This document shows positions 6,382 through 26,858 of a DNA stretch of 64,000 nucleotides, in pieces. Both the position numbers and the translations under genes were made by a program. Position 1 is the stretch's first letter. Each line of letters begins with the position of its first letter. Source of the stretch: Heteronotia binoei. Taxonomy: Eukaryota. The notes under the pieces were generated by a model. The model searched no databases, had not been told where the DNA came from, and worked only from the letters and a program-made list of their open reading frames with translations. The stretch is taken from positions 53,444,001 to 53,508,000 of the forward strand of contig NC_083233.1 of assembly GCF_032191835.1 (NCBI RefSeq), read 5' to 3'.

Positions 6382-6747
6382 CAGGGGTGGCCACATGTGG
6401 CTCTTTCACACATATTGTATGGGTCCCAAAGCCCCCACCTCCCCATCAGTAGGCTTGAAGCAGGCATTCCTCTCTTTAAATCACTTCTCTAAGCCAAGTC
6501 AGCCAGTGGCTTGGAGACGGCATTTAAAGTTAAAGTTGCTTTCTTTCCANNNNNNNNNNNNNNNNNNNNNNNNNNNNNNNNNNNNNNNNNNNNNNNNNNN
6601 NNNNNNNNNNNNNNNNNNNNNNNNNNNNNNNNNNNNNNNNNNNNNNNNNNNNNNNNNNNNNNNNNNNNNNNNNNNNNTACAGCTCTCAAACATCTGACAT
6701 TTATTTTATGTGGCTCTTATTACATTAAGCATGTTTGGCCACCCCTA
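6382..6747. mobile_element. hAT-type MITE spanning the N gap
   Basis: caggggtggccac...tggccaccccta termini on either side of the gap. Confidence 0.7.
6550..6677. other. Assembly gap (128 N)
   Basis: Run of n. Confidence 1.
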
Positions 6748-6964: not shown

Positions 6965-7025
6965 ATGATGAGGGGCCTTCATGAGTGCTTATTGCTTCTG
7001 TTGTCCCTGTGTGGAATCACCTCAG
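6965..7025 (+). CDS. Fish-egg lectin-like gene A (FEL-A), coding exon 1 (signal peptide MMRGLHECLLLLLSLCGITS)
   Basis: ATG at 6965, hydrophobic leader, donor CAG|gtaagc; 61 nt, phase 1, in frame with exon 2. Confidence 0.85.
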
Positions 7026-7224
7026 GTAAGCACAAATGTGTCCTTTACACAGAAACAGTCTGGAGCTGTATTTTTTTAATTAGTTTTGTGATGTCAGAAG
7101 TGATGACATGCCTCTAGTGGCCCCCCCCCCCGAAAATGTTCTGCCTTTAGACCTCGGGCATGCAGCATTTAAAAGCCTCAAGGGCAGACTTGCAAACATT
7201 TGCAGAGGGATTAATTTTCACAAC

Positions 7225-7355
7225 CAGGGATTTTTTTGAGCAGGAACACTCAGGAATGCAGTTCTGGCTGGCTTGGTGTCAGGGGGTGTGGCCTAATATA
7301 CAAATAAATTCCTGATGGGCTTTTTCTACCCCCCCCCCCCCAAAAAAAAGCCCTG
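7225..7355. mobile_element. hAT-type MITE in FEL-A intron 1
   Basis: CAGGGATTTTTTT...AAAAAAAGCCCTG, TSD ttcacaac/gtcacaac (7 of 8). Confidence 0.8.
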
Positions 7356-8069
7356 GTCACAACATAGTGCATACAGGGGAAAGTTATTGTACCTTTCTCC
7401 AGTTCACTCCGGAGAAAGGTATAAGGATGCCAGCCTCTGGATGGGATTTGGGGTTCTCCTGGAATTACAGCTCATCTGCAGACTACCAAGATCAGTTGTC
7501 CTGGAAAAAAATGGATGCTTTGGGGGGTGGGCTCTATGGCATTGTGCCTGACTGAAGTCCCTGTTCTCCCCAGGCTCCATCCTCAAATCTCCAGAAGTTT
7601 CCCAACCTGGCAACCCTAAGAAGAGAGAATGTTCAAATGTCAAGGAAAGCTGAACATACTCCCTTGAGAATGAGGAGCCCAAATTCCACGCTCACCTCGC
7701 CCCAGATTTAAAAGCCTGCTTGCAGGAAGGGCAGGATACAAATCTAATAAAATAAATTAATGAATTTATTTTATTAGATGTCATCAAGTCACAGCCAATT
7801 TATGGCAATCCCAGCAAAGGGTTCTTAAGGCAAGTGAGAAGCAGAGGTGGTTTGTCATTGCCTTCCTCTGCAAGGTCTTCTTTGGTGGTCTACTTTCCAA
7901 GTACTAACTAACTAACCAAGTACTAACTGCTCTGAGCTCTGTGAATTCAGGCAAGGGTAGTATATAAATCTAAATTATAAATAAATAAATAAATAAATAA
8001 CCCTGCTTCACTTCTGAGATCTGATGAGATCAGGCAATACCATGTCGCCTTTCCTTCTAAATACTGAGA

Positions 8070-8275
8070 GATAGATGGGTAGCTGTGCTGATCTGAAGTA
8101 GCAGAACTAGGTTCAAGTCCAGTGACACCTTTAAGTCCAACAAAGTTTTATTCAAAGTATAAGCTTTCATGTGCATGTATGGTTCTTCAGATGTAAGTGT
8201 GTGTATACACAAAAACTTATACTTTAAATAAAACCTTTGGTCTTAAAGGTGCCACTGGACTCAAATTTTGTTCTA
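8070..8275. mobile_element. Penelope-like terminal repeat in inverted arrangement; related copies at about 335-565, 1600-1700, 30398-30665, 41620-41820 and 43995-44205
   Basis: gagtccagtNgcacctttaagaccaac...aagctttc paired with its reverse complement, typical of reptile Penelope-like element ends; family assignment from recognition only. Confidence 0.6.
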
Positions 8276-11233
8276 TTGAGACATAGATTCATTAGTGGGG
8301 ATAGAATCTTCATGTGAATACAAATGGAGGCATCTACAAAGAATACAATTTAGAAAGCCTGATTAAAAGCTGAAGAACAACCTGAAAGGCCAAGTAAGGT
8401 TGCCAACCTCCAGTTGGGGCCTGGAGATCCTCCAGAATTACAATGACAGAGTTCATATGACAGAATTCAGTCGTCCTGGCTGCTTTGGAGGTGAATTATA
8501 TGATGTTATACCCAGCTGAGGCCACTATCATCCCCAGGCTCCACCCCCAAGTCTCCAGGAATTTCCCTACCCAGATCTGGCACCCCTAGGCTCACAAGGA
8601 ATTATGGGAAGGAGGACTGACAATCAGGAAGTAGTGCCGAGTTCTCTTGTCTAGTTCCGATTCTCATCAACCTATCATTACAGTGCAGTTCCCCTACAGC
8701 TCTGGCCTTTGTGCAAAAAGAGACTTGTATATCCTAAAACTGAAGCAGCCCAGAGAAGATGTATGTCTGTTTTAATATCTCTCTCTCTACGTAATTAGAG
8801 TTCAGTGAGGGAAACGGAGTCCAGGCAAACATCTCCCTCCCTAATGTAGCACACATATCTCCATTCCAGAGTACTTTCAGCCACAAAGGACCCTGCCTCT
8901 TCATAACTAAAGGAATCTGGGGGGAGTGGATCAATTAATTACAAATGGAAGAAGAGTTTTTCTTCTAACCCACAACCACACACTACAAGTCTGATCCAAA
9001 TAGGATCTCTACATACCTGAACATTAAATTACATCTGGAAACTCCCACTGCACATCTGCTTGATAGAACTTGGAGACAGAATAGTGTATCATATACTTAG
9101 ACCCCTAAATAAATATTTTAGGGGCTGTGGGAGGGCAGGTGGGATAGCCCAGTCTCATCAGATCTCAGAAGCTAAGCAGGGTCGGTACTTGGAAGGGAGA
9201 CCTCCAAGGAAAACTCTACAGAGAAAAGCAATGGCAAACCACCTCTGCTTAATCATTTGTCTTAAAAACCCTATGGGGGTCACCATAAGTCAGCTGTGAC
9301 TTGACGGCACTGTATGCACACACAGTCAAGCCCTGTACTATAGAATAAAGTAAGAGTCCAGTAGCACCTTTAAGACCAACAATGTTCAAGAAGCAACTGA
9401 AAACTACCGTGTTTCCACAAGGATTCTGTTCTTCCTTGACTTCCTTTCAACAGCATTGTTTTCAGTAGCAGTTACATCATGTCATCCTCTATTTATCCTT
9501 TCTATGTTTTGTTTGGTGTGATCTTTCCCAATCTTGGTCAAAGATAATCATTTTCAACTATCATAGTTAAAGCTGCTTTGGATTATGTGTGGATGGGAAG
9601 ATGCACATTTTTTTCCGGTCCAGCCCTCACTGACACTATTTTGTTTACCCCAAGTGCTTGCAATGGCCATTTCCTTCCTCCACTAGAGGACTTTCTGGGG
9701 CTTTTAAAAATATTAGTAATGGCTATATCACTATGATGTCATAACAACATAATGTCTAGTATAACAATAAACTAGTTCCTATCTTTTTTTAAAAAAATAT
9801 AAGTATCTAGCCTTTTTAGCTGCTTGGTTATAAGGGGACAGATCCTGGCTGCACATTTTGTCCTATAATTGTTCAATGGAAAGTGCTAGACACTTTTATG
9901 CAATGAAAGCTGGGGTCTAGTAGACTGCTACAACAAAATGTTATGCTATAGTATTATAGCTGATGCTTTTTACAAGCTTCAAAATAGCCCTCCAGTTGTA
10001 GGGTGGAAAATGGCAGCCACCAAGGCTGAGACAAGGAAAGTGAGGATGAAACTTACATGTGGATGTTCCATTGCTACCGTGAGTGCCTTTGCATCTTCAG
10101 GAGCAACAATATAGAGATGTTGTCTCTGTGTGGAAGCAGCCCTGCATAACAATTTAAAAACTAATGTTCATTGGCCACTATCCTTTTGATCTCAGAACTT
10201 GTTTCGTTATCATGATTAATTTCATTTAGCGATGTGCCATGATCAATACAAAGCTTATCTCATCTTGAGCTTTCTAAGCAGCCTCTGAGGTTAAACGATC
10301 AAAAGGTGGGGTATAAAATGTCAAAAAAGGTAAGAAAGGTATACCCCAGCTTTCTTCAACCATGCCACTCAATGTAACTCACAAAGGATTCCTGAGTGGT
10401 TTCCCACCCAAGTGCTGATCAGACCTAAATCTGCTTAGTTTCAGCTAAGCTTCTCTATTATGTACCTTCCACCCATACTCTAAAACGTATTTACTTCATT
10501 TAAACCTCTCCTCTGCAATGGGGACCCAAAACAACTTGCACTGTTACCCTTTCCTCCCTTTTATGATCACAACAACCATGGAGACTGAGAGTGTGTAACT
10601 GGCCCAAGGTCACCTAACGAGCTTCCATGATACCATGAGGGATTTGAACCCAGGTCTCCAAGAATCTAATCTGACACTCTGACCTCGGGATCTCTAACCT
10701 TACTGAGCCTGTGGGCATATTTGGAATTCTGAGACAGTGTGGTGGGCACAGCACAAAATGGCTGTCATGGGATGTGGATCCAGCCATAAAATGGCAGCTG
10801 CATCTTGCTTTCAGTCATACAGTGAAAATTCTTCTGCAGTGGTGGAAACTGCTGACAAAGTAATTTTTAAAAAATCTGCACAGTCAGTCAACTCTCCGAT
10901 GACTAATCAGAAGTCTTGCTGGACAAAACCCCCACCTAGCTCAACCCACTACCTGAAAACACTTGGGCACCAGGAAAGGTGTCAATGGGCACCATGACAC
11001 TCATGGGCACCACACTGGGAACCCTAACCATTTCAACAGACAATGAAGAAAAATGCAAGGAATATATAGGCCAAGACTGAGCGTACTCTAAGCAGCCAGC
11101 TGTGGTGCCCCTTTGGAATGGTGGCCTCCATATCCTTGCATCCACTCAGTTCTTTACCTCATTTCTGGAGTTTCCCTATTTGCTCATAAATCCATGCTTA
11201 TGATATTTTTCCTTCCATTCTCTCCCACCCCAG

Positions 11234-11461
11234 CTCTGCAGTGTACTGTAGTTCCAGGAGCTCTTACACAGATTGATGTCAGCAATGGACAAGTCTTTGG
11301 TGTGAACAGAGCAGGCAATATTTATACCTTGTATGGAACCACATGGACCCAGTTACCAGGGGCACTGACCCATGTCACAGTCGGTCTTGATGGCATTTGG
11401 GGTGTGAACTCAGTTAACTCCATCTATAGACTTGTGGGTGGCAACTGGAAGCAGGTTACAG
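11234..11461 (+). CDS. FEL-A exon 2 (ALQCTVVPGALTQIDVSNGQVFGVN...WKQVTG)
   Basis: cccag| acceptor, |gtattt donor, 228 nt phase 1-1; tectonin repeats (W-x-x-x-x-G-x-L-x-x-V...GVN) resembling carp fish-egg lectin. Confidence 0.95.
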
Positions 11462-12398
11462 GTATTTTAAGTCAACTCACTTTGTGGGGGTGTGAAAGGA
11501 GAATAAATAAACAGAGATATGGATATTGAAGACAGAATGTGTTTAAAACCCAAATTATATTTTCATAATGTAAGTACAGCCATCTGTATAAGTCATGCAC
11601 TGATCTCTGCTTCTGTGATAGTGAGAAATTACTTCAGAAGAACCAAAAATCCATATTTTCCTAATGAGAAAAATATATGCATGTGGGGAGAAATGGCAAA
11701 CTGGAAGAGAAATATACGACTTTCCCTGTGTTTATAATGCACTGAAAATGTTCTTCCATTATTTCTACACAATATTATTCTGTCATATGGGCTCTTGACC
11801 TGGAAGTATGCCTGGCTGAAGGGAAAAAAATACAAGAGTATTTTCTGGTTGTACAATATGCCAGTTAGTTAGTTTCTAACCCCCACTCCATCCCATGTTG
11901 ATGAAATTAGTCTATATGATTGGTTGGACACACTTATACACCAGGTTTATATTACAAGGGGATAAAATAGGGTATGTCAACCTAAACATACCCATGATTG
12001 TAATCCCTAGCTGATTTCTTCTGACATATTTTAAAATTTGATTATATCTTCATTAGAGAATTGAACAGGCAAATATTCAGTGTGCCAGAATTCAATTTCA
12101 ACCTGAAATTTCCTTGAGCCCCAAAATGAGGTGAAAGACCACATATGAATTTGGTAAATAAATCTGCATACATCAATCATCAAATACTGTGCTACACTGA
12201 AAACAATACAGGATGTTAAAGATATACTTCAATATTCAACAAACCCTCAAGCAGTCAGAGGCTTATCTGGAATACAGTCAATTATCAAACTTTATATATG
12301 GGGACAAATATATGTTGGGAGCAAACTTAATTCAGTTCTGTTCCACTAGGCTTCAAGTCTCATGTCCAGTAGACCTAGATCTTTCTGTTACTTTTCAG

Positions 12399-12738
12399 GT
12401 TTGCTGAAACAAATTGATGCAGGAGGAAGCCAGTTTATAGTTGGAGTCAACATGAATGATGACATCTATTGCCTGCCCAAGTCAGCAGCCATTGCTGCTG
12501 ATGGCAACTCAGAACTGCCTTGGGTCCACATTGAAGGAAAGCTCAAATACTACTCCTGTGGGCCACTGGGTTGCTGGGGAGTTAACTCAGCTGACGCCAT
12601 CTTCTTCCGGCATGATGTCACCCCAGATTCCTGTGCCGGATCCAGGTGGCAGAATGTGCCTGGCGGGCTTTCCATGATTGAGGTTGGGACAGAAGGAGAT
12701 GTGTATGGAGCAAACAGCGCTGGACAGATTTATCGGAG
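12399..12738 (+). CDS. FEL-A exon 3 (GLLKQIDAGGSQFIVGVNMNDDIYC...EGKLKYYSCGPLGCWGVN...GQIYR)
   Basis: ttttcag| acceptor, |gtacag donor, 340 nt phase 1-2; motifs LLKQ(I/V)DAGG, GVNMxDDIYCL, GKLKYYSCGP and LSMIEV match fish-egg lectin. Confidence 0.97.
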
Positions 12739-13743
12739 GTACAGAATGGACTACTTAGAGAATGGGAAAGGCTTTCCTCTCCATAAAGCCATGCATCTTA
12801 CACAGGAACTGTGCCCCTAATATTAATTAGATGTGATAGCGATGGGCCCATCACTTTAAATGTGGATCTATAGGGTGGCAGTTGAGTATAAGAGTTAAAA
12901 GGATGGTTGAGAGATGCTGAATCATAACTGTGTCTCATTGGTCCTGGTGCTGTTCTCCCAGCCAGGATTGCCTTCCGTATCAGAAAACAGCTGAGGGAAA
13001 AGTAGCATTAGAGGACAGCCAAGCCACAGAGAGATAACCAACTGATAGCGGAACAGTTCAGTATTGCCCACCTGAAAAATACTTCATGCTTAACATGAGA
13101 TTCCCTGCTCTCTCTCCTTCTCCTGATAGGTGCAGTTTCTTATTTAAAGAGTTAGATAAAGTTTATCCCTCACAATGTGATTTTAGAGATTAAGCCCAGA
13201 GAAATCTGAGAAAGAAGCTCCCTGCAGTAGAGTTTCCAATCCCCAGTTGGAGACAGGGAATCCCCTGATTTGGAAGCCCTCCCTCTGCTTCAGGATCATC
13301 AGAAAGGTGTGGGGAGGGAAATTGTTGCTGGGCACTCCATTATATCCTATGGAGATCAATTCCCATAAGGTATAATGGATAATTGATCTGTAGGTATTTG
13401 GGGCTCCAGAGGCTTTAGGTAGAGGCACCGTAATTTCAGCATAGTATCTGGTAGCTCTCCTCAAAACACTCCCCAAGTTACAAAAAGATTGGACCAGGGG
13501 GTTCAATTCTATGAGCCCCCAAAGAAGATGTCCCTATCCTCCATTATTTCCTATGGAAGGAAGGCATTTAAAAGGAGCATGGTCCCTTTAAATGTGATTG
13601 CTAGAATTCCTTTTGGAGTTCTATCATGCTTGTCACTCCCTTGCTCCTGGCTCCACCCCCAAAGTCTCCTAGCTCCATCCCCAAAGTCTCCTAGCTCCAT
13701 CCCCAAAGTCCCCAGATATTTCTTCCCTATGGGGTGGGGGTTG

Positions 13744-14012
13744 AGAGCCAGTTTGGTGTAGTGGTTAAGTATACAGACTCTTATCTGGGAGAACCAGGTT
13801 TGATTCCCAACTCCTCCACTTACAGCTGCTGGAATGGCCTTGGGTTAGCCATAGCTATTGCAGGAGTTGTCCTTGAAAGGGCAGCTGCTGTGGGAGCCCT
13901 CTCAGCCCCACCCACTTCACAGGGTGTCTGTTGTGGAGGGAGAAAATACAGGAGATTGTAAGACGCTCTGAGTCAGAGAGAAGGGCAGGGTATAAATCTG
14001 CAGTCTTCTTCT
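13744..14012 (+). mobile_element. tRNA-derived SINE (Squam3-like); related copies at 14303-14562 (+), 34385-34660 (+) and 39725-40187 (-)
   Basis: A box tggtgtagtgg, B box ggtttgattcc, (TCT)n tail. Confidence 0.8.
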
Positions 14013-14995
14013 TCTTGAGCAAACTTGGCAACCCTACTCTACCATTTAGGTTTTCCTCCATGAGGCAAGTAACACTTCAAAATTATATCAGGAAAGTGGC
14101 TCAGGGAGATGACTTAGCATCACCTGTCCTCTTGTCACAAACCTAACCTGAGTTGAGTGTCCTTTGGCTGCTTTTAAAAATCATGGATATCTCTGCATCC
14201 GGTCTAGTTTTTTTTTTTTTTAATGACTGAGAATGAAGTTTTAAGTGAATGAAGAAAGGCTGGAACATGGGTAGCCACACACCAGAGATGTTCACGTTAA
14301 CGAGTCTTTGGTGGTTAAGAAGAGCACAGACTCTAATCTGGGAGAAACAGGTTTGATTCCTCACTCCTCCACATGCACCTGCTGATGGAACCTTCAGTCA
14401 GTCACAAGTTCTCTCAGAACTGCTCCCTCAAGAGCAGTTCTTGAAAATGCTCTTTTAGCTCCACCTACCTCACAGCATGTCTGTTTTGGGGGGAAAAGGA
14501 TATTGTTAACCCACTCTGAGATTCCAAGTAAAGGGCAGGATATAAATCCAGTCTCCTCCTCCTTTTTTGATAGTAGATAGGGGGAAGAAGGAGGAAGACC
14601 AAATAGGGGGGACCAGGTGGGTGGCAGTTAGAGCAAGGAGCCCAGAAAGGGTGTGTAGATGCCCAGGCAATGTCATGGTTTTTCCTTCCATTCCAAATTA
14701 CTTTTAATAACCAGCTGGTCGTTTCCCTTATGCCTGGATTTCTAATGGACAATGCCAATTTTGCCAAACACCTGAAAAGTCCTGGCTACAAAAGTAAGCA
14801 ATGTATGCCCTAGCAAGGTGTTTTCTTCAGATCCTAGATTTAGTGTCTCACTTTACTCATAGAACACATAACTCTAGCAGTTTTTAAAACTTTATTGTCT
14901 GTAACACTTGTACATAGAGACGCAATTCAAAAACTTCATCCCACAACTACAAAGCAAACTAATTCTTAGGATATTCTTGTTAAATTTTCTTGCAG

Positions 14996-15140
14996 GGTTG
15001 GAATCAGTGCTGCCAATCCCATTGGAACTGCGTGGGAACATTTGAGCCTTGACCTTGGAGCGATTAAACACGTGTCGTATGACCTGGGCCACCTGTGGGT
15101 TTTGACTACAGAAGGAAAAATTTTGAACTGCAAAGGTTGA
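14996..15140 (+). CDS. FEL-A exon 4, terminal (RVGISAANPIGTAWEHLSLDLGAIKHVSYDLGHLWVLTTEGKILNCKG*)
   Basis: ttgcag| acceptor, phase 2, TGA at 15138-15140; KHVSYDLG-x-LW matches FEL KHVSFDLGVLW; joined CDS 774 nt = 257 aa; ATTAAA at 15207. Confidence 0.93.
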
Positions 15141-15281
15141 CCAGTCATTCATAATTTCTTTGCCAGCAGTGCTTGCTTTGTTTGTCATGGCCAGTGGTGT
15201 CAAGACATTAAACATTATCCAGTGATACAGGCAAATGCTTCCTGTGTGTCATCCTCTCTTTTTCAAGTTTTCAACAAACTT

Positions 15282-15787
15282 AAGTTGGGGCTGGAGTTCT
15301 TCCAGAGCTGCAACTGATCTCCAGAAGGATCAGTTCCCCCAGATGAAATAGCAGGTTCAGAGGGTATACCATAGAGTCTAGAACAAACTGAAGTGAAGAA
15401 AATCACTTGTATTTTCTGTAACACAGTCCCCCTCCTTTTCTTTTAAAGACAGTAAAATATCTGAGACAGATGTTATTTCCCAGCTCTCATCCCTTTCAGA
15501 AACTAGACCAAAATAGCTGATGCTTAATATATATTTAATTTGCAATGAAATTCATGTACTTTTAAACTGATAAAGCTTGGTCACTTACGATTCTTGAGCA
15601 AGCTAAATAGATTTATGGTTGGAATTTTTTAAAAAAATGAAAGGAAATATCTTCTAAATTTGTTTATCAAACTCAAGTTGGGGCTGGAGTTCTTCCAGAG
15701 CTGCAACTGATCTCCAGAAGGATCAGTTCCCCCAGATGAAATAGCAGGTTCAGAGGGTATACCATAGAGTCTAGAACAAACTGAAGT
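15282..15787. repeat. Exact 113-bp direct duplication (15282-15394 = 15675-15787)
   Basis: Identical base for base by inspection. Confidence 0.95.
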
Positions 15788-18276
15788 CCTAGATTAACAT
15801 CACATCCCCGCTGAGCTGCTGCCCCTCCTCAAATTCCACTATCTCCAGACTTTGGCCCCAAGTTTCTAGGAATTTCCCAAGTTGGAGTTGTCAATCTTGT
15901 TTTTAAGAAAGAGGAAAGGGAACCTGAGACTGGTTTTTGTGATATTCACAATGGAACTGCACAAAAAGCAGTATGTGTTAAGAGCACTGAGAATAACTAC
16001 TTTTTAAATACATTCTAATAATCATGGGAATTTCATCATCACTGTTCAAACAGCTCTGCATTTTGATGAACATTTTAAATAATCATCTGAAGCTCAAAGT
16101 TTGCAAGGAATGGTGGTGGTCTTCTCAGATCTTCCTAAATGGCATTACTGGATACAGTTTCTTGCACAACTGGTGCTTCCTTTTTAAAGGGAGAAGCATG
16201 CATTGTGACACACAGCCTACTTTCTGATCTTAAATTTTCTACCCACAATGTGTCCAGACAGCCTATGCCTATTCAGTGCTGAGAGGCATTATGCTTATGT
16301 ACAGATGCACATTCTTTTGTTAACATTTCATTTGTGGCAAAGCCTGGGAATTCTAAGCAGTTTCCAAGACTGACCTGATCAAACCGACATTCTTCCTGTG
16401 CTTAACTGCTGCAGGATTCCAAGGATGCAAGTGCTTTCTAAGAATTCTGCTATGGAGAGGTTAGAGTTAGAAACCAGTTGCTGACTATCTGCCAAGGCTC
16501 TTCTTGGATCATTAGCAGTTTAGGAGATTTTTCCCAGGCTCTGACTTCCCACATCCTTCAAAAAATCCTAATCTGAGGCATTGGTTCTTACCTGCTGTTT
16601 GCTATCTACATTTATAACTATGAATGGCCCTATGGCAAATGTCCTCTGCCATTGCCATCATGGCCTGCTTAAAACTAGGTTGAAAATGGCTAAACAAATA
16701 TGGCAAGAGGCATTCAGATGAACATCATGACATATTAACTTCGCTTGCAAATCCAGTCCAAAACTATACTTTGCAATGCAAATTCACACCTCAAAGTCTA
16801 TTTTCTTGCTCTAGGATTGCCAGGTCCCCCAGGCCATCAGTGGGGAATGGGGGTAGCATTGCCAGATTGGGAAACTCCTGGAGGCTTGGGATGGAGCCTG
16901 GGGAGGGCAGAGACTTCAGTGGGTTATAATGCCATAGAGTCAGTCCACCGATCAAAGCAGTCATTTTCTCCAGGGGCACTTATTTCTGTATCAGGAGATG
17001 AGGTGTAATTTGGAGGATCCCCAGGTCCTACCTAGAAGCTGGCACCATATCTTCTCACTGTCATACTGCTTAGCAGAACTCATCAGATGCATCCTTGCTG
17101 ACTGTTAAGGAGTTTGATTGCCCTGACCTCAATTCACAACAATGGCAGTCACTGATGTGGGCACAGAAACTTATTACATGATGGTGTGGAATAACATGAC
17201 ATGTTCTGATTCAAGCTGAAGTTGCAGGCCTGGAAGGAGCTGTGACTGAAATCTCCAAGGCATATTTAGATGTGGAAGACATAAAAGGTGCAGGCCAAAT
17301 CAAATTGAGATATGTTTTGTGTGATTAAAGGGTTTTCCCCACAATAATGCCTTGCAATTGTACAACTTTTCTTTGCAGCTATTTGTATTTTATCTAATCT
17401 TATGAATCAATATGAGCACCAACATTAAACTATAAACAAGTTTTTATTAGCCTTTCAGTTCTCTGTCATTTACCACAAGGAAAAGAATGAAGAAAAGCAG
17501 ATAACACAAATAGAGATCATTTTTATATGCGGCAGAACCAATCTCAAGGCAAATATATCTATATGTTGTTATGCAATATTTGACGCATGAACCAGCTGGG
17601 AAAGAGAATTGTTGGCAACAAGTATTTTGGATGATTAAGATCTGGGCTGAACTTCTGTTTCCCTTCCTGATACTTCCTGCTATTTAATCTTGGGCGTGGC
17701 CAAAGGCTTGAGCCTTTTGGTGTGAGCCAAAGAGCAAGACTGTTTATCTTTGGCTCTTAGCTCACTGTTCATAATTTGTGGTTATGAGAGAGGCAGCCCA
17801 ATGAATCTAAGAACAGTTCAGAATGAAGCATATTGTACTCCTTGGGATTTTTTTTTTTGTATATTTGTACATTGTAAACTGCTTCACACACTCCACTGCA
17901 GAGGAAAAGGGGATAGATAAATACACTGTGTCTCTGTAATGGGTAAGGCTAAATATTTAACATCCTGCAGTGTGCTACATGGTGACCCTTGAGATGCATC
18001 TTTTGACCTAGGATGACATTCAAAGATAACATTGGGGTTGGGGGGGGGAGACTAACGGAGGAATCCAGACACTCCAATTGCCTTCCTTGGAGTAAGGGAT
18101 GGAACAATAGAATGAAGGGGAATGACCCATCCATCTTCATTTCTAATGGCACTGCAAGCACAAGCAAATATGTTGTCAAAAATGTGTCAAGTGGGAGATG
18201 TGGATTTGGGGAGTGGGGTTATATGTTCTTCCCCATCTAATTCAAAACAGAATACTCAGTGCCTCTCTTAAAGACA

Positions 18277-18324
18277 ATGAGAGAGACCATTACATGCTGA
18301 TATTGCTATATAGAATCACATTCA
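18277..18324 (+). pseudogene. FEL-B paralogous exon 1, frameshifted relative to FEL-A
   Basis: Aligns by eye to FEL-A exon 1 (ctctctt-aaagacaATGag vs ttctctt-gaacatgATGag; gaatcacattca|gtaagt vs gaatcacctcag|gtaagc) but is about 10 nt shorter; ATG 18277 reaches TGA at 18298-18300; alternative in-frame ATGs at 18294 and 18198. Confidence 0.65.
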
Positions 18325-19372
18325 GTAAGTGGGAACTAGAACTTCATTCCTAAACTCTGCAGCCTGTGACTCACAGTAAGGGGGAATTCAGATTGCTGTG
18401 GTTCAAATATCCAAGCTTTGCTATGATTACATCAAGGTACCTATAGTATTTATTGATGATGAGTTCCTCTGAATGGCATGAGGGTGTTGCCGCCACGCTG
18501 TAAGCAGCAACAATACTGAGGCATGATACTTGGCGGGAGGGGGGCCACTGCAGATACCAGAATGAGGGTTGCCAGCATTGGGTTGGGGATTACCTGGAGA
18601 TTTGGGGGTGGGGGTAGAGCCTGAGAAGAGTGGGGTTTGGGGAGAGACTTCAGTGGGGTATAATTCTATAGAGTCCACCTTCCAAAGCAGCCATTTTCTC
18701 CATATGGACTGAACTCCATTGCCTGATCAACAGGAGATCTCCAGCCACCACCTGGAGGCTGGCAACTCTAACAAGATCTCTGTTAACAAGGCAAGCTCTA
18801 TAACTGAATGAGCAGGTCCTATCAGGGCAACTAGTAAAAGCGGAGGGGTTGTAAGAGCAGAAGTCAAGGCTGTGGATGTCGCTAGTAGAGAAAACCAGAG
18901 CAGCAACCAAGGAGAGGCAAAAGAACAAGGAGGGAGGAATCAGGGAAACCCATATGGAGGCCACCAAACACAATCTTAAGCCCAATACCAGGTGGGCTTT
19001 TGCTCAGGCATTATTTTTAGCTAGGCCAGATCAGGAGGAACACACCACTAGGGTGCTGGAGATATGGAACATATCTTTCATTCCATACCATAAATGGAAG
19101 ACCACCAGGAGACTTCTAATCCTTATCATACAATGTCCTTATCAAACCACAAGGCTGTTCATACCCAGATGAACAGGAGATAATTTTCTTGTTCCAGACT
19201 GAGACTTGCATGAGCGATGGTTCCTCACAGGAGCAGGGATATCTGCAGTATTCTACCCATCTCAATCCAATCTTATCCTCTTTGGGATATACCTACATTT
19301 GTGATAGACCTGCATTTATGACAGACCTACATTTGTGGATGAGCATATAAACATGACACCTTTTTGCTCTAG

Positions 19373-19600
19373 TTTCAGATTGTGAACAGGTGCCTGGAGC
19401 ATTGACCCAGATCGATGTCAGCAATGGACAGGTCTTTGGTGTGAACAGTGCAAGCAACATTTACACCTTGTATGGAAACACATGGACCCAGTTACCAGGG
19501 GGACTGACCCATGTCACAACTGGTCCTTCTGGAGTCTGGGGTGTCAACTCAAATCATAACATCTACAGGCTTGTGGGTGGCAGCTGGAGGCTGGTTACAG
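19373..19600 (+). CDS. FEL-B exon 2 (SDCEQVPGALTQIDVSNGQVFGVN...WRLVTG)
   Basis: ctag| acceptor (alternative cag| at 19378), |gtattg donor, 228 nt, same size and phase as FEL-A exon 2, open frame. Confidence 0.92.
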
Positions 19601-20485
19601 GTATTGTAAGACAGCTGATTCATGGTTGTATGGATGCATAAGAAACGGGGAGAGGGGATGCTAAAGGCATGCACAAAAAAGAATATTTATTAGCAAAATT
19701 TGGCAAAAGGTGGCTTTCTTGTGTAATCACTTTTGCCTCTGAAGTTTTGTTCTCACCCAGTGCCTACAGTCAGCCCATGTTATCTGTCATTTGCAAGCTG
19801 ATTGAGTCCTATAATGATATAAAGAAAAGGTTGTTGGGTAGGTGCAACCAAGAGAAAAAAACAGCCTTCTATCTGGAGTCTGTATTAAAGGCACTGGAGC
19901 AGAAGTTGTGAAAGGGGGATACAGAATCTGCTTTGGTTTGTGTTCCATCACTCATATAGCACAGGCTCTCAAATAGACAACAGATGCCAATTGAATTTTT
20001 ATGGAGGAACTTTACTTGATTCACAATGGAAGTTCTACACTCAGTAAACATCCAAGGACTGCTCTTTCCCTAATACTTTATTGTAAAACAATACTCATTA
20101 CAGAGTTCTTTGAATGGTGTGCACCCATAAAACTCGATGTGTGAAAGAAAGGGCTAGCTTTGCATATCCTCATACATTACCAGGCTTCTAACATGCACAT
20201 CAAATGGCAATTCCACCACTGCATGATCAAAAGCCATAGTACTTACTAAATATGCTTCAGCGTTCCTGGTTGTACAATGAATCCAGATCCCATTCATCTT
20301 ATATGCCGCCATAAACTCCAGTGGTATGGTTGCCTGGGCACATGATGAACCACCCAGGGCTTAGTTGACATCAGCTGAAACAACTGAATTTCTTTCTGCA
20401 TATCGTACCAAATGTGACCTAATCCTTAATATATACATTTTGATAGGTTGCCCTAAAATCCTAGATCTTTCTGCTATTTTTTCAG

Positions 20486-20825
20486 GTTTGCTCAAACAGA
20501 TAGATGCAGGTGGAAGCCAGTTTATAGTTGGAGTCAACATGAATGATGACATCTATTGTCTGCCCAAGTCAGCAGCCATTGCTGCTGATGGCAGCTCTGC
20601 ATTGCCCTGGATCCACATTGAAGGAAAGCTCAAATACTACTCCTGTGGGCCACTGGGTTGCTGGGGAGTTAACTCAGCTGACGCCATCTACTTCCGGCAT
20701 GATGTCACCCCAGATTCCTGTGCCGGATCCAGGTGGCAGAATGTGCCTGGCGGGCTTTCCATGATTGAGGTTGGGACGGAAGGAGATGTGTATGGAGCAA
20801 ACAGCGCTGGACAGATTTATCGCAG
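20486..20825 (+). CDS. FEL-B exon 3
   Basis: ttttcag| acceptor, |gtacta donor, 340 nt, open, about 96% identical to FEL-A exon 3. Confidence 0.95.
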
Positions 20826-21286
20826 GTACTATTAAGAAGACTCTGGCTGGAAGAGTCTCCATCTTTTGGAGGTGTACTGCCACTTACAGGAGGCTGTGGC
20901 ATGTCTTGAACCAGAGTAGCAAATACTAAAGCAAAGAGATAATTCTGGAGGGATTTCAGTTCCTTCGTGACCGAATACCTGTGACTCAAGCAGCATTTGA
21001 GTACAAACCACCCAGGGCAGGTCATTGGATTCAGTTTCAATCTCAAGCATGACCACCTCAAAGCCAATCAACACATTATACACATTCCTGATGTATTTTT
21101 AAATGGGGAAAAAAGTCTCCTGTGGCTGCAACTCTGAGAGGAGATCAGTCAGCAAAGTACGGTTGCCAATCCCCAGGTGGGGCAATACAAAGAACAAACA
21201 CTGTGATATACAAGCTACAATGTTCAGTAACTTTATGAGTCATATAAATCTGTTGCATGTATTATATTATAAATACAACTTTACAT

Positions 21287-24200
21287 GGGGGTGGGTGGGG
21301 GGTGGGCTCCCTCTGGGAATCCTACCCCCCCAGGGAAAGTGCATGCGCAATACATAGCCTCTCCTCTCCCGGTGTAGTGAACGCCGCGTGGTCACTGTCT
21401 GGCTATGCCTGGCAGATGGTCACTGCAATGGCCTCTCCTGCATTACTGCATCCGTAGCAACACCTTCTCGCTGGTCCCCCCCGTTTTCACAGAGTTTGCT
21501 ACGTCATGGTGCGACCGAATGTCCGGCGGTATAACCGGATGGGCAGGCTGGGCCCACCAACCTCGCCAGCCTAAGAGAAGGAAAACTCTAACATCAAACC
21601 CGGGCAGATAGAGCTCGTTAATGTAACATCTACCACCTGGAGGACTCGCTGCCAGCGTCCCAGCTTACTGGGCCATGGCAGATGACCCCCAGGTGAAAGG
21701 GTGGAGCCAGTACCGCGCACACTGCGCTTCACCTAAAAAATTCCTCTGCGCAGGCCTGAAGGGCATATCCACACACACAACACACAACGCATCAAGTCCT
21801 GCAGCGATGGGCAAGGGGCGAAACGGCAGGTGGAAGGTGCCACTGGAAGCCGCAGTCCCGATCCTGCATGTAGGCGGTTCAGGGTATTGGTCACCTGATG
21901 CTAACCCGGAGACGAAAGCATTTTTCGGCAGCACCCTGAACGACCAAGCAGCCTTATCTAGGGACAGCACTGCTTGCTCCACACGGAGAGGGGCCTAGAA
22001 AAGGTGGCCTAAACAAAGCTCGTCTCCCCCACCCCAGTTGGCTAGCCGCGGTCAACGGGCATCCTTACTTGCGGTCGAAAAATAACAACAAAGAAAAGGC
22101 ATGCACCTGCCTCACAAAGTGTGCAAAGACTAAAGCTTGCGTGTTGGAACATCAGAACCATGCTTGACACAGTAGGCAGTGGTCGCCCTGAACGACGCTC
22201 TGCTCTAGTTGCCCACGAACTTCTCAGGTTGAATATCGACATAGCAGCTCTCAGTGAGGTCCGTTTCCCTGAGGAAGGTAGTCTTCAAGAACACGGTGCT
22301 GGCTATACCCTCTACTGGTCGGGTAAGTCAAAGGCTGAGAGCCGCCTTTCTGGCGTTGGCTTCATGGTCAGGAACTCCATTGCCTCCAAACTCGAAAACC
22401 TGCCAACAGGTCACTCAGATCGCATCATGTCCATGCGCCTCCCACTTCAAAACAAGCAGCATGCAACACTCTTCAGTGTGTATGCCCCAACCCTTCAAGC
22501 AGATCCTGCAGAAAAGAACAAGTTCTATGCTGATCTACGCAACCTCGTACGGAAGACCCCTACAGAGGACAAGGTGATCATCCTTGGCGACTTCAATGCC
22601 AGAGTAGGTAAAGACTCGGAAGCCTGGAAAGGAGTACTTGGCAAACACGGCATTGGCAACTGCAATGACAACGGGCGCCTCCTGCTAGAATTCTGCATGG
22701 AGCACCAGCTCACCATCACCAACACTATCTTCCAGCAGAAGAACAGTCTGAAGACAACCTGGATGCACCCACGGTCCAAGCATTGGCACCTTATCGACTA
22801 CATTCTGGTGCGCCAGAGAGACCTTCGAGATGTCTTACACACCCGAGTAATGCCCAGCGCAGAATGTCATACGGATCATCGTCTTGTACGCTGCAGTCTC
22901 CGTCTTCACTTTAAACCCACACCCAGGAGAGGAGGTATCCCTCGGAGGAAGTTTCAGGTTGGCAGCCTCCAGTCAGCCGAAGTTAAAGCTGCCTTCCAGG
23001 CAAAACTCCAGTCAAGAATTGAGGACCCCAGTTGCCCCACAGACCCTTCTCCAGAAGCACTCTGGGAACACCTAAAAACTGCCGTCCTGCAGATCTCTGA
23101 AGAAGTCCTCGGGTTCTCCACAAGGAAGAACAAGGACTGGTTTGATGAGAACAATCAAGAGATCCAAGAATTACTGGCAAAAAAGAGATCTGCCTACCAA
23201 GCACATCTTGCTCAGCCCTCCTGTCCTGGGAAAAAAGCAACCTTTCGCGCTGCATGTAGCAACCTCCAGCGCAAGCTTCGAGACATTCAGAACGAGTGGT
23301 GGACCAAGCTTGCAGAGAGAACCCAGCTGTGTGCAGACACTGGTGATTTAAGAGGATTCTACGAAGCCCTGAAGGCAGTATATGGTCCATCATATCAGGC
23401 TCAGAGTCCCTTGCATAGTGCAGACGGCCAAGTGCTCCTCACAGACAAGGCATCCATACTGAACCGGTGGTCGGAGTATTTTCAGGTTCTCTTCAGTGCC
23501 AACCGCGTAGTTCAAGATTCAGCAATCCACCTCACCCCACTTCAACCGGTGAAAACAGAGTTGGATGAGATCCCCACCCTAGAAGAGACTGTTAAAGCCA
23601 TCAAGCAACTGAAAAGTGGCAAGGCAGCAGGAGTTGATGGAATTCCACCAGAGATCTGGAAGCATGGGGGCACAGTACTACATAGCTCACTTCACAAAGT
23701 ACTTGTCACCTGCTGGGAACAAGGCAAATTACCACAGGACTTTCACGATGCAATCATCATCACCCTACACAAGAACAAAGGGGAAAAGTCAGACTGCTCC
23801 AACTACCGGGGGATAACCCTGCTCTCCATCGCAGGCAAAATCCTTGCCAGAATACTCCTGAACAGACTGGTGCCCACCATTGCAGAAGAACTCCTCCCAG
23901 AGAGCCAGTGCGGCTTCAGAGCTAACAGGAGCACCACCGACATGGTATTTGTTCTCAGGCAGCTCCAAGAGAAATGCAGGGAACAGAACAAGGCTCTGTA
24001 TGTGACTTTTGTCGACCTTACCAAAGCTTTCGATACCGTTAGCAGGAAAGGCCTGTGGCAAATCTTGGAACGTTTAGGATGTCCCCCAAGGTTCCTCAGC
24101 ATGATCATCCAGCTACACGAAGACCAGCGAGGCCAAGTCAGACACTGCAACGACCTCTCGGAGCCCTTCCCAATAGGCACAGGTGTAAAGCAAGGCTGCG

Positions 24201-25391
24201 TTCTCGCGCCAACTCTCTTTACGATCTTCTTTAGCATGATGCTTCAAAGAGCCGCAGTAGATCTAGATGATGACGATGGTGTATACATCCGCTATCACAC
24301 CGATGGCAGCCTGTTCAACCTGAGGCGACTAAAGGCACACTCCAAGACAATGGAAAAACTCATCCGAGAGCTACTGTTTGCTGATGATGCTGCACTCGTC
24401 TCCCACTCGGTATCAGCTCTGCAGCATATGACGTCCTGCTTTGCAGAGGCTGCCAAGCTATTCGGCCTAGAAGTTAGTCTGAAGAAGACAGAAGTTCTCC
24501 ACCAGCCTGCACCCCAGGAAGATTATCACCCCCCCTGCATCACTGTGGGTGAATCAGTTCTGAAGACAGTCCAGCAGTTCAGCTACCTGGGGTGCATCAT
24601 CTCCTCAGATGCCAAGATCGACAAGGAGATTGACAACAGGCTGGCAAAGGCAAACCGTGCATTTGGCCGACTGCACAAAAGAGTGTGGAGCAACAAGCAT
24701 CTGAAAAAAGGCACAAAGATCAATGTTTACAAAGCGGTTGTGATGACAACCCTCATCTACGGTTCCGAATCGTGGGTTTTATACCGTCATCACCTGCGAC
24801 TCCTTGAGCGCTTTCATCAGCGCTGCCTTCGCACCATCCTCAACATCCACTGGAGTGACTTTGTGACCAACACTGAAGTCCTCAAGCGAGCGGAGGTTAC
24901 CAGCATTGAGGCACTGCTGTTGAAGACGCAGCTGCGCTGGGCAGGGCATATTTCTAGGATGGAAAACCACCGCCTTCCCAAGATTGCCCTGTATGGCGAA
25001 CTCTCCACCGGCCATCGAAATAGAGGGGCACCAAAGAAGAGGTACAAGGACTCCTTGAAGAAATCCCTTAGCACCTGTCACATCAACCATCACCAGTGGT
25101 CTGACCTAGCCTCAGATCGCAAAGCATGGAGGCACACCATCCACCAGGCTGTCTCTTCCTTTGAGAACGCACGCATAGCTGGTCTTGAGGACAAAAGGAG
25201 ATTGAGAAAGAATCGCACTGCTACGGGACCAACCCTAAATCAGACTTTTCCCTGCAGCCGCTGTGGCCAGACCTGCCTGTCCCACATTGGTCTTGTCAGC
25301 CACCAGCGAGCCTGCAGCAAACGTGGACTATTGCACCCTTCTTAAATCTTCGTTCGCGAAGCCAAGCCGAGAGAGAGAGAGAGAGAGAGAG
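21287..25391 (+). mobile_element. Full-length RTE-clade non-LTR retrotransposon in FEL-B intron 3
   Basis: 12-bp TSD acaactttacat (21275-21286 / 25392-25403), about 760-nt 5' region, single long ORF, short 3' UTR ending in a (GA)n tail. Confidence 0.96.
22121..25345 (+). CDS. RTE ORF: AP endonuclease + reverse transcriptase + C-terminal Cys/His finger
   Basis: 1074 aa with no stop; ALSE, LGDFNA, IDYILV and TDH (APE); QCGFR, FVDLTKAFD, GVKQG and LFADD (RT); C-terminal CxxC-x12-H-x3-C. Confidence 0.96.
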   Translation: MQRLKLACWNIRTMLDTVGSGRPERRSALVAHELLRLNIDIAALSEVRFPEEGSLQEHGAGYTLYWSGKSKAESRLSGVGFMVRNSIASKLENLPTGHSDRIMSMRLPLQNKQHATLFSVYAPTLQADPAEKNKFYADLRNLVRKTPTEDKVIILGDFNARVGKDSEAWKGVLGKHGIGNCNDNGRLLLEFCMEHQLTITNTIFQQKNSLKTTWMHPRSKHWHLIDYILVRQRDLRDVLHTRVMPSAECHTDHRLVRCSLRLHFKPTPRRGGIPRRKFQVGSLQSAEVKAAFQAKLQSRIEDPSCPTDPSPEALWEHLKTAVLQISEEVLGFSTRKNKDWFDENNQEIQELLAKKRSAYQAHLAQPSCPGKKATFRAACSNLQRKLRDIQNEWWTKLAERTQLCADTGDLRGFYEALKAVYGPSYQAQSPLHSADGQVLLTDKASILNRWSEYFQVLFSANRVVQDSAIHLTPLQPVKTELDEIPTLEETVKAIKQLKSGKAAGVDGIPPEIWKHGGTVLHSSLHKVLVTCWEQGKLPQDFHDAIIITLHKNKGEKSDCSNYRGITLLSIAGKILARILLNRLVPTIAEELLPESQCGFRANRSTTDMVFVLRQLQEKCREQNKALYVTFVDLTKAFDTVSRKGLWQILERLGCPPRFLSMIIQLHEDQRGQVRHCNDLSEPFPIGTGVKQGCVLAPTLFTIFFSMMLQRAAVDLDDDDGVYIRYHTDGSLFNLRRLKAHSKTMEKLIRELLFADDAALVSHSVSALQHMTSCFAEAAKLFGLEVSLKKTEVLHQPAPQEDYHPPCITVGESVLKTVQQFSYLGCIISSDAKIDKEIDNRLAKANRAFGRLHKRVWSNKHLKKGTKINVYKAVVMTTLIYGSESWVLYRHHLRLLERFHQRCLRTILNIHWSDFVTNTEVLKRAEVTSIEALLLKTQLRWAGHISRMENHRLPKIALYGELSTGHRNRGAPKKRYKDSLKKSLSTCHINHHQWSDLASDRKAWRHTIHQAVSSFENARIAGLEDKRRLRKNRTATGPTLNQTFPCSRCGQTCLSHIGLVSHQRACSKRGLLHPS

Positions 25392-26713
25392 ACAACTTTA
25401 CATACAACAGATTTATATGACTCATAAAGATACTAAACATGGTAGCTTGTATATCACAATGTTTGTTCTTTGTATTGCCTCAATAATGAACTGTAATCCC
25501 CAGGTGGGAGCAGGGCATCTCTCGGTTTGGAGGCCCTCCCCTTGCTTCAGTCATCAGAAAGTGCAGGGGGCAGGGAAATGTCTGCTGGGTATTCCATTAT
25601 TCCCTATGGAGACCGATTGCCATATGATATAATGGAGAATTGATCCGCAAGTATCTGGGACTCTTGGGGGGGGGGCGTTTCTTGAGGTAGTGGCACCAAA
25701 TTTGCAGCATAGCATCCGATGTCTCTCCTCTGAACATTCTCCAAGTTTCAAAAGGATTGGACCAGGGGGTCCAATTCTATGAGCCCCAAAAAACAATGCC
25801 CCTATCCATTATTTCTAATGGAGGGAAAGCATTTAAAAGGTGTGTGGTCCCTTAAAATGTGATGGCCAGAACTTCCTTTGGGGTTCAGTTATGCTTGTCA
25901 TAATCTTGCTCCTGGCTCCACCCGCAGTGTCTCCAGATATTTCTTTAATTGGACCTGGCAACCTTACAGCAAGGAAAAAGCCAGCATGTTATATGGGTTA
26001 GAGTGCTGGCCTAAGATCTGAACCCCTAGGCTGCCATGGAAGTTCAATGGGTGATCTTGGTCCAGTCACACACTCCTTCAGCCTCACCTAGCTCACAGGG
26101 TTGCTATTGTGAAGATAAAATGGAGGCCTGGAAAATGATGTTGTAAGACTTTTTGGGTCATAACGAGGGAAGGAAGCAGGATATTCATGAATAAGGCTGC
26201 TAGATCATTTCCCCTGAGACCATTTTCCCATCTAAAATAACAAATTGAAGAGAAAAGACATGGCAGCTGTATATATTTATATCTGAATATTCTTTGAGAG
26301 GGCAAAAGGATCTAGGAGAGATTTTGAGCAGAATAGCCAGGGTAAAGGTTACGTAGCAACCCTGGACTCATTCTCCCTCCAGTTATTTGCAGTTTTTACA
26401 AATAAATCATGGGAGGAAAGTTATCTGCAATTAAATGTAATATGTGGCTTCAATCCACTGAAAACACCTATCTGGAAGCAGGAGCCGCTTCAGACATTCA
26501 GCCTTGTTTGGGTCACTTTTGCATCAGATTGATCCATTTGGGGTGAAGATTTGCATCTCTAGCAATTTTTTCTTTTCTATTGGCTTCTGCACATGTGTCT
26601 TTAACCAATAGGTAAAGCAACAGTGAATTAGGTCCATTTATCAAATTAACCTCAAGGATGCTCATTTTCATACAGAGCTAAATGAACACCTGTCTTATTA
26701 CCTTTTCTTCCAG

Positions 26714-26858
26714 GGAAGGAATCACCAAAGGCAATCCTATTGGAACTTCTTGGTCACTAGTAGACAAAAAAAATGGGAAAGCTAAGCATGTGTCCTATGA
26801 CCTGGACCGGATGTGGGTTGTCACTTCAGAAGGGAACATATTCAAATGCAAAGTATGA
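26714..26858 (+). CDS. FEL-B exon 4, terminal (REGITKGNPIGTSWSLVDKKNGKAKHVSYDLDRMWVVTSEGNIFKCKV*)
   Basis: ttttcttccag| acceptor, 145 nt as in FEL-A, TGA at 26856-26858, KHVSYDL motif. Confidence 0.93.

Follow-up and report, generated by a model that had tools for sequence, protein, structure and literature searches.

A fish-egg-lectin locus of the gecko Heteronotia binoei is probably one gene with an optional second propeller

Fish-egg lectins (FEL) belong to the tectonin family and are known from fish eggs, where they are innate-immune proteins with a single propeller. Here we analyzed a reptile FEL locus at positions 6965 to 26858 of a 64,000-nucleotide (nt) stretch of the Heteronotia binoei genome (NC_083233.1:53,444,001-53,508,000, + strand; hereafter the window, to which all coordinates refer). 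The locus contains two FEL copies on the same strand, A (6965-15140) and B (19373-26858), and our analysis indicates that it is probably a single transcription unit derived from an old FEL tandem duplication, in which B is reached by an in-frame splice from A. No third FEL copy was found within the 64-kb window. The window also has an assembly gap at 6550-6677. The features of the locus are the following; a slash marks the cut in a splice site or the split in a codon.

6965-7025, + strand: A exon 1, 61 nt, with the start codon, the signal-peptide-like leader MMRGLHECLLLLLSLCGITS and a phase 1 donor, CAG/GTAAGC; corresponds to residues 1-20 of the public protein P0275
11234-11461, + strand: A exon 2, 228 nt, Tectonin profile positions 2-66
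12399-12738, + strand: A exon 3, 340 nt, Tectonin profile positions 70-178, inside the conversion tract 12374-12742
14996-15140, + strand: A exon 4, 145 nt including TGA, ending GGT TGA; terminal exon of the short (one-propeller) form
15133-15141, + strand: alternative 5′ splice site AAG/GTTGAC, cut between 15135 and 15136, phase 1, seen as a joint in RNA contigs
15207-15212, + strand: polyadenylation-signal hexamer of the short form, recognized in the sequence; depth in RNA set X1 drops after about 15350-15550
18261-18329, + strand: probable relic of B exon 1, by similarity to A exon 1
19373-19600, + strand: B exon 2, 228 nt, acceptor of the fusion splice, Tectonin profile positions 2-65
20486-20825, + strand: B exon 3, 340 nt, inside the conversion tract 20460-20829
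26714-26858, + strand: B exon 4, 145 nt including TGA, ending GTA TGA; terminal coding exon of the long form, corresponding to residues 447-493 of P0275

The two copies have identical phases (1, 1, 2) and split Ala, Gly, and Arg codons; in copy A the junction codons are G/CT, G/GT, and AG/G, and the latter two are identical in copy B. The initial annotation had described two four-exon genes with identical phases and with exons 2 to 4 of 228, 340, and 145 nt. These sizes and phases hold, but B lacks a coding exon 1 and is spliced in frame onto A exon 4, and the public model is one gene with seven coding exons. The Pfam profile PF19193 (Tectonin; cut-off, 30 bits) runs collinearly over exons 2 to 4 of each copy (profile positions 2-66, 70-178, and 181-216), with scores of 83.8 and 81.7 bits for exon 2 and 148.5 and 148.1 bits for exon 3 in the two copies. 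Exon 4 alone reaches 25 bits, below the cut-off, yet is collinear in both copies. The leader MMRGLHECLLLLLSLCGITS is hydrophobic and coincides with a low-confidence N-terminal helix (residues 3-14; low predicted local distance difference test [pLDDT] values) in the structural model of P0275. The locus has no other working leader exon than A exon 1, which encodes a putative signal peptide.

Evidence for the splice from A to B comes from RNA data aligned to positions 14950-20940, namely, two small sets of assembled metatranscriptome contigs (X1 and X2, both from one study) and two deep raw-read runs (X5 and X6). Contigs of both X1 (depth, 8.4) and X2 (depth, 12.1) join position 15135 to 19373 with GT..AG ends, skipping 4237 nt (15136-19372). 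The donor splits the last sense codon of A after its first base, just upstream of the stop codon at 15138-15140. Because this donor and the B exon 2 acceptor are both in phase 1, the frame is kept, and translation of the 57-nt junction context reads ...ILNCK-V-SDCEQVPG... The X2 contig runs from the end of A exon 3 through A exon 4 into B exon 2. The X1 contig contains the end of A exon 4, the whole of B exon 2, and 59 nt of B exon 3, including the joint between B exons 2 and 3 (19600 to 20486), and has zero mismatches at B-specific positions. A exon 3 is likewise joined to A exon 4 in RNA contigs. At the protein level, a search for public short protein fragments across the A-B junction found none. 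X2 differs from the window at five listed positions in A exon 4, four of them synonymous, which implies that the junction was seen in two slightly different animals.

The same data contain the short form. In X1, unspliced RNA continues through the A stop codon into the 3′ untranslated region at a depth of ∼38 versus ∼8 for the fusion, and this A-terminated RNA tails off by ∼15550, downstream of the polyadenylation hexamer at 15207. In X2, the fusion contig is the sole form assembled. A was thus seen alone (in X1, through its stop codon), and no independent start of a B transcript was seen in X1 or X2. Two side observations concern the RNA and the sequence downstream of A. The 3′ flank of A carries a 120-bp direct repeat with 99% identity (15275-15394 and 15668-15787), and one X1 contig skips 15263-15402 in this region. 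In all four runs, RNA depth over a short element at 18668-18771 is very high, up to thousands, and numerous loose ends flank it on either side; the element probably belongs to a widespread transcribed repeat and not to the lectin gene.

Where, then, would a transcript of B alone start? A scan of 15141-19372 for a hydrophobic (signal-peptide) exon running from ATG to GT gave nothing convincing. The best trace of A exon 1 in the intergenic region is at 18261-18329, and the orthologous site is also the best match in Gekko kuhli. Both copies of this sequence lack 12 nt of the hydrophobic core; in the window, because of a 2-nt insertion, the frame from the ancestral ATG (18277) closes at a stop after 7 codons, and in G. 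kuhli the donor GT is lost. Alignment scores against shuffled sequences are borderline (26 versus 22.8 ± 2.5 for the window and 35 versus 22.9 ± 2.9 for G. kuhli), and we therefore grade 18261-18329 as a probable rather than a certain decayed relic of the B leader exon. RNA depth is 0 over the surrounding region (18150-18349). The annotations of G. japonicus, Sphaerodactylus townsendi, and G. kuhli start B with three different first exons, each encoding 4-8 residues without a signal peptide; these exons are mutually non-homologous. Traced to the window, they lack the donor or the ATG wherever the homologous site could be aligned.

We propose the following model. Copy A would have retained the promoter, the signal-peptide exon, and exons 2 to 4, and copy B only exons 2 to 4, its leader having decayed. 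A transcript could then meet one of two fates. If it ends at the A stop codon and polyadenylation signal, it would encode a 257-amino-acid (aa) protein with one six-bladed propeller; if the weak donor AAG/GTTGAC is spliced to B exon 2, the product would have 493 aa, a single signal peptide, and two complete FEL propellers that follow each other with no linker. The short form would be a classical FEL. By analogy with carp FEL, the products would be secreted and would bind sugars or microbes, and the long form, probably a lectin that is secreted and has its binding surface doubled, would have a higher valency and hence, we infer, be a better cross-linker of glycans or microbes (agglutination). 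A role in egg, oviduct, or skin defense, as suggested in the initial annotation, would be speculative.

The assignment to the FEL family is well supported. Exon 3 matches carp fishelectin (4RUQ/4RUS) with an E value of 1.9e-43, and the fold and domain checks, done on the public 493-aa protein P0275, found two PF19193 matches. An AlphaFold model of P0275 has a mean pLDDT of 90 and is all-beta, with both halves confident. Superposition on 4RUQ_B gave a template modeling (TM) score of 0.96, a root-mean-square deviation of 1.2 Å, and 47% identity over 236 columns, the listed match covering one half; Laccaria tectonin 2 (5FSB) gave a TM score of 0.84. The model thus has the six-bladed beta-propeller fold of solved FEL, and the initial identification of A and B as FEL/tectonin paralogues is borne out.

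Sequence comparison across four geckos, H. binoei, G. kuhli, G. japonicus, and S. townsendi, which span the Sphaerodactylidae-Gekkonidae split, indicates that B is maintained. B exons 2 to 4 are open in all four, and the pairwise ratio of nonsynonymous to synonymous substitution rates (dN/dS, or omega) is 0.26-0.44 for B, the same as for A, which points to purifying selection on both halves. Selection on B in the absence of a start of its own fits expression via A. The two copies have not diverged evenly. Identity between A and B is 80% (nt) and 78% (aa) in exon 2 and 65% (nt) and 53% (aa) in exon 4, versus 95-96% (nt) and 96.5% (aa) in exon 3, and the 95% identity extends over exon 3 and 25 nt of upstream intron (12374-12742 and 20460-20829). 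Within both H. binoei and G. kuhli, exon 3 of A and B is 96% identical, while the orthologues are ∼91% identical; exon 3 is thus closer within than between species, which argues for independent gene conversion in the two. Exons 2 and 4 group by type across species (A with A and B with B). These patterns indicate that exon 3 is homogenized by recurrent gene conversion and that the conversion is confined to this exon. The idea of a diversifying lectin cluster, put forward in the initial annotation, fits poorly with purifying selection on both halves and a homogenized exon 3.

The arrangement is found in other lizards. G. kuhli and S. townsendi have A and B orthologues arranged in tandem, and in G. 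japonicus the two are on one scaffold; the copies are therefore old duplicates and not haplotypes, as had been expected. The gecko A-B tandem sits between an OSBP-like gene and C5orf52, the same flanks are found in the cordylid Hemicordylus capensis, and an OSBP-like gene likewise lies upstream of the FEL locus in the skink Lerista. Three geckos (H. binoei, G. kuhli, and S. townsendi) and Hemicordylus capensis retain the G/GT donor (GGT plus stop), and the NCBI model for Hemicordylus, a protein of 535 aa, is cut at the same position (...RCK-D-VSCEQ...). Neither Paroedura picta, with a single intact gene and some fragments, nor Lerista copy 1 has the donor. In trees of the whole length and of exons 2 and 3, the cordylid halves pair with each other; the tree of exon 4 alone joins cordylid B to gecko B (support, 89/81). 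A single ancient origin, blurred by conversion, is a plausible but not a certain reading of these trees. More speculatively, the donor that overlaps the stop codon might be an ancient conserved switch predating the split between geckos and the cordylid/skink-type lizards, by which one promoter doses monovalent and bivalent lectin, with exon 3 conversion keeping the two sugar-binding cores alike while exons 2 and 4 diverge; we consider this possible but doubtful.

The genomic comparison yielded some further observations. A Leu-rich in-frame stretch upstream of Hemicordylus B exon 2 is a (CTG)n run without an ATG and was rejected as a leader. On G. japonicus scaffold KQ747144.1, the end of A exon 4 and its 3′ flank occur twice, ∼35 kb apart (L001:1-133 and L003:15340-15480), both with GAT; the repetition reflects a third partial copy or else a duplication in the assembly. 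Lerista copy 1 ends in ATT TGA, without the fusion donor, and in Lerista edwardsae a second open and uncalled FEL copy (exons 2 to 4; L006:18414-21637) lies 5 kb downstream of the annotated gene. In Paroedura picta, FEL fragments (exon-3-like and partial exon-4-like, out of order; L005:3874-4530) upstream of the intact gene suggest that one FEL copy was lost.

Several points weigh against a single transcription unit. The deep runs X5 and X6 contain almost no FEL reads over 14950-20940, and the support for the junction consists of assembled contigs with a depth of 8-12 from two small metatranscriptomes of one study. The RNA comparison ended at 20940, short of the splice between B exons 3 and 4 and of the 3′ end of B. 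The model of P0275 has a predicted TM score of 0.66, which makes the geometry between the two domains uncertain. In G. japonicus, the donor is GAT, with no GT, and yet B is intact, implying either another route of expression in this species or that B has newly become unconstrained. Finally, an open reading frame (ORF) of 31 nt, from an ATG at 18294 to a phase 1 donor at 18325 (GTAAGT), is in phase with B exon 2 and could, at least in theory, start a leaderless B transcript.

This ORF, which would encode MLILLYRITF, is an example of the short first exon that B could have if A and B were two independent genes, with B under its own promoter and the A-B splice a minor read-through by-product. A leaderless transcript has been reported for zebrafish leukolectin (bioRxiv 10.1101/2022.07.29.502062), A and B are modeled separately in the annotations of G. 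japonicus, G. kuhli, and S. townsendi, and the missing donor in G. japonicus also speaks for separate genes. We nevertheless regard this explanation as unlikely. No RNA covers the candidate first exon (18150-18349) while B exon 2 is covered, and in both runs the sole upstream partner seen for B exon 2 is A exon 4. A leader of 10 residues is too short for a normal signal peptide, and the candidate exon is not conserved, G. kuhli having no GT there; the three other annotated B first exons share no homology with each other, and the NCBI model for H. binoei is itself the fusion.

A reading of B as a partial pseudogene in decay, with the fusion transcript as splicing noise that has no role as a protein, would agree with the loss of the B leader exon and with the low share of the fusion in X1 (depth ∼8 versus 38-57). 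However, a decaying copy would hardly have kept exons 2 to 4 open across the Sphaerodactylidae-Gekkonidae split with an omega equal to that of A, the fusion is in frame and has its stop codon in the last exon, conservation of the donor reaches a cordylid, and X2 assembles only the fusion form; we consider this reading very improbable. An assembly artefact, with haplotypes collapsed or duplicated, might explain the 95% identity over exon 3 and the adjoining 25 nt of intron. It does not explain the mere 80% and 65% identity of exons 2 and 4, introns that differ in length and content, orthologues that group by type across four species, or RNA that joins both copies; we reject it on the last two grounds and give it next to no credence. 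One gene with an optional second propeller remains our preferred interpretation.

How much of this was known before? The NCBI gene LOC132579492 (H. binoei CM063335.1; extract L007 8001-27894) is letter-identical to window positions 6965-26858 and is annotated as one gene with 7 coding exons and a 493-aa “uncharacterized protein” (P0275), with the same junction as in the RNA. We retrieved P0275 by a protein search with a frog two-domain FEL model as a long query, and all seven exon translations from the window are consecutive in it. No 257-aa H. binoei protein was among the proteins returned by the FEL database search, so the short form seems to be unannotated. “Fish-egg lectin-like” genes are annotated in geckos, skinks, turtles, alligator, amphibians, lungfish, and coelacanth; the FEL family and its presence in reptiles are therefore already known and not new here. 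Our literature search found no relevant paper on FEL in reptiles or on a two-propeller form, in agreement with the initial remark that these proteins are little studied in amniotes. Hence, the two-propeller model is already known, annotated yet uncharacterized. New here are the RNA support for both forms, the donor overlapping the stop codon and its conservation, the probable decayed B leader, the selection on B, and an account of the odd B models in other geckos.

The locus does not open a long-standing question, and its gene model is already in the NCBI annotation. On our interpretation, it shows how a tandem duplicate may turn into an optional second domain by loss of its leader and use of a donor that overlaps the stop codon, and it would capture, at an intermediate stage that can still be switched, the route from a gene pair to a tandem-repeat lectin. 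It would also explain the odd, leaderless B starts proposed by gene predictors in other gecko genomes.

The 3′ half of the locus has some features of its own. B intron 3 contains an intact long interspersed nuclear element (LINE) ORF of 1074 aa (22121-25345, + strand) that is oriented like the gene and encodes an apurinic-type endonuclease (PF03372 and PF14529) and a reverse transcriptase (PF00078) domain; it makes up most of the extra length of this intron. The end of B, AAA GTA TGA (26850-26858), is also a possible donor (AAA/GTATGA), and in the models of G. japonicus and G. kuhli this site is spliced to different, non-homologous extra 3′ exons, which may be real or artifactual.

Carp fishelectin (4RUQ, apo form; 4RUS, holo form), whose structure is solved, has the family and fold in common with the gecko protein and is a secreted six-bladed tectonin propeller. 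It is a single propeller of 238 aa, whereas the gecko, an amniote, can carry two propellers in one chain. Salmon and zebrafish leukolectin genes have 5 exons of 55, 234, 218, 119, and 139 nt (bioRxiv 10.1101/2022.07.29.502062). Compared with salmon leukolectin, the gecko locus has the gene structure of vertebrate FEL/leukolectin, with a short leader exon and Ala, Gly, and Arg codons split at matching junctions. It differs in its exons of 61, 228, 340, and 145 nt, gecko exon 3 corresponding to fish exons 3 and 4 combined, and in its splicing into a second copy, fish leukolectin being reported without such alternative splicing. Two-domain FELs also occur in frogs (Mixophyes fleayi LOC142107719 and LOC142106910; Dendropsophus ebraccatus), likewise with one signal peptide, two complete domains, and no internal leader. 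Their halves are joined by a short linker (TNDN or TAFTEVESNDL) and group together in the tree; they are therefore probably an independent fusion. Two further apparent doubles, a frog protein of 549 aa (P0121) and a grouper protein of 526 aa (P0126), have a second internal signal peptide and were set aside as merged neighboring genes rather than true fusions.

In its splicing, the locus resembles conjoined genes, in which an upstream gene is cis-spliced in frame into exon 2 of an adjacent downstream gene on the same strand (Prakash et al. 2010, PMC2953495). The gecko splice, likewise in frame, bypasses the stop codon of the upstream unit and the first exon of the downstream one, and a canonical cis-splice joins adjacent units on the same strand. 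Independent expression of both parents, which also characterizes conjoined genes, was not found. The downstream parent has no working first exon, and the chimera is apparently its sole route to a protein; moreover, the parents are paralogues, the donor lies in the last exon and overlaps the final codon, and the arrangement is conserved across lizard families rather than sporadic. Since B has neither an independent start nor a working exon 1, the locus is better termed one gene with an optional second module. At the protein level, the long form would join the tandem-repeat lectins, which achieve multivalency by repeating a carbohydrate-recognition unit within one chain (PMC11186620). That review makes no mention of tectonin or FEL double propellers, and the gecko repeat is distinct in that splicing makes it optional.

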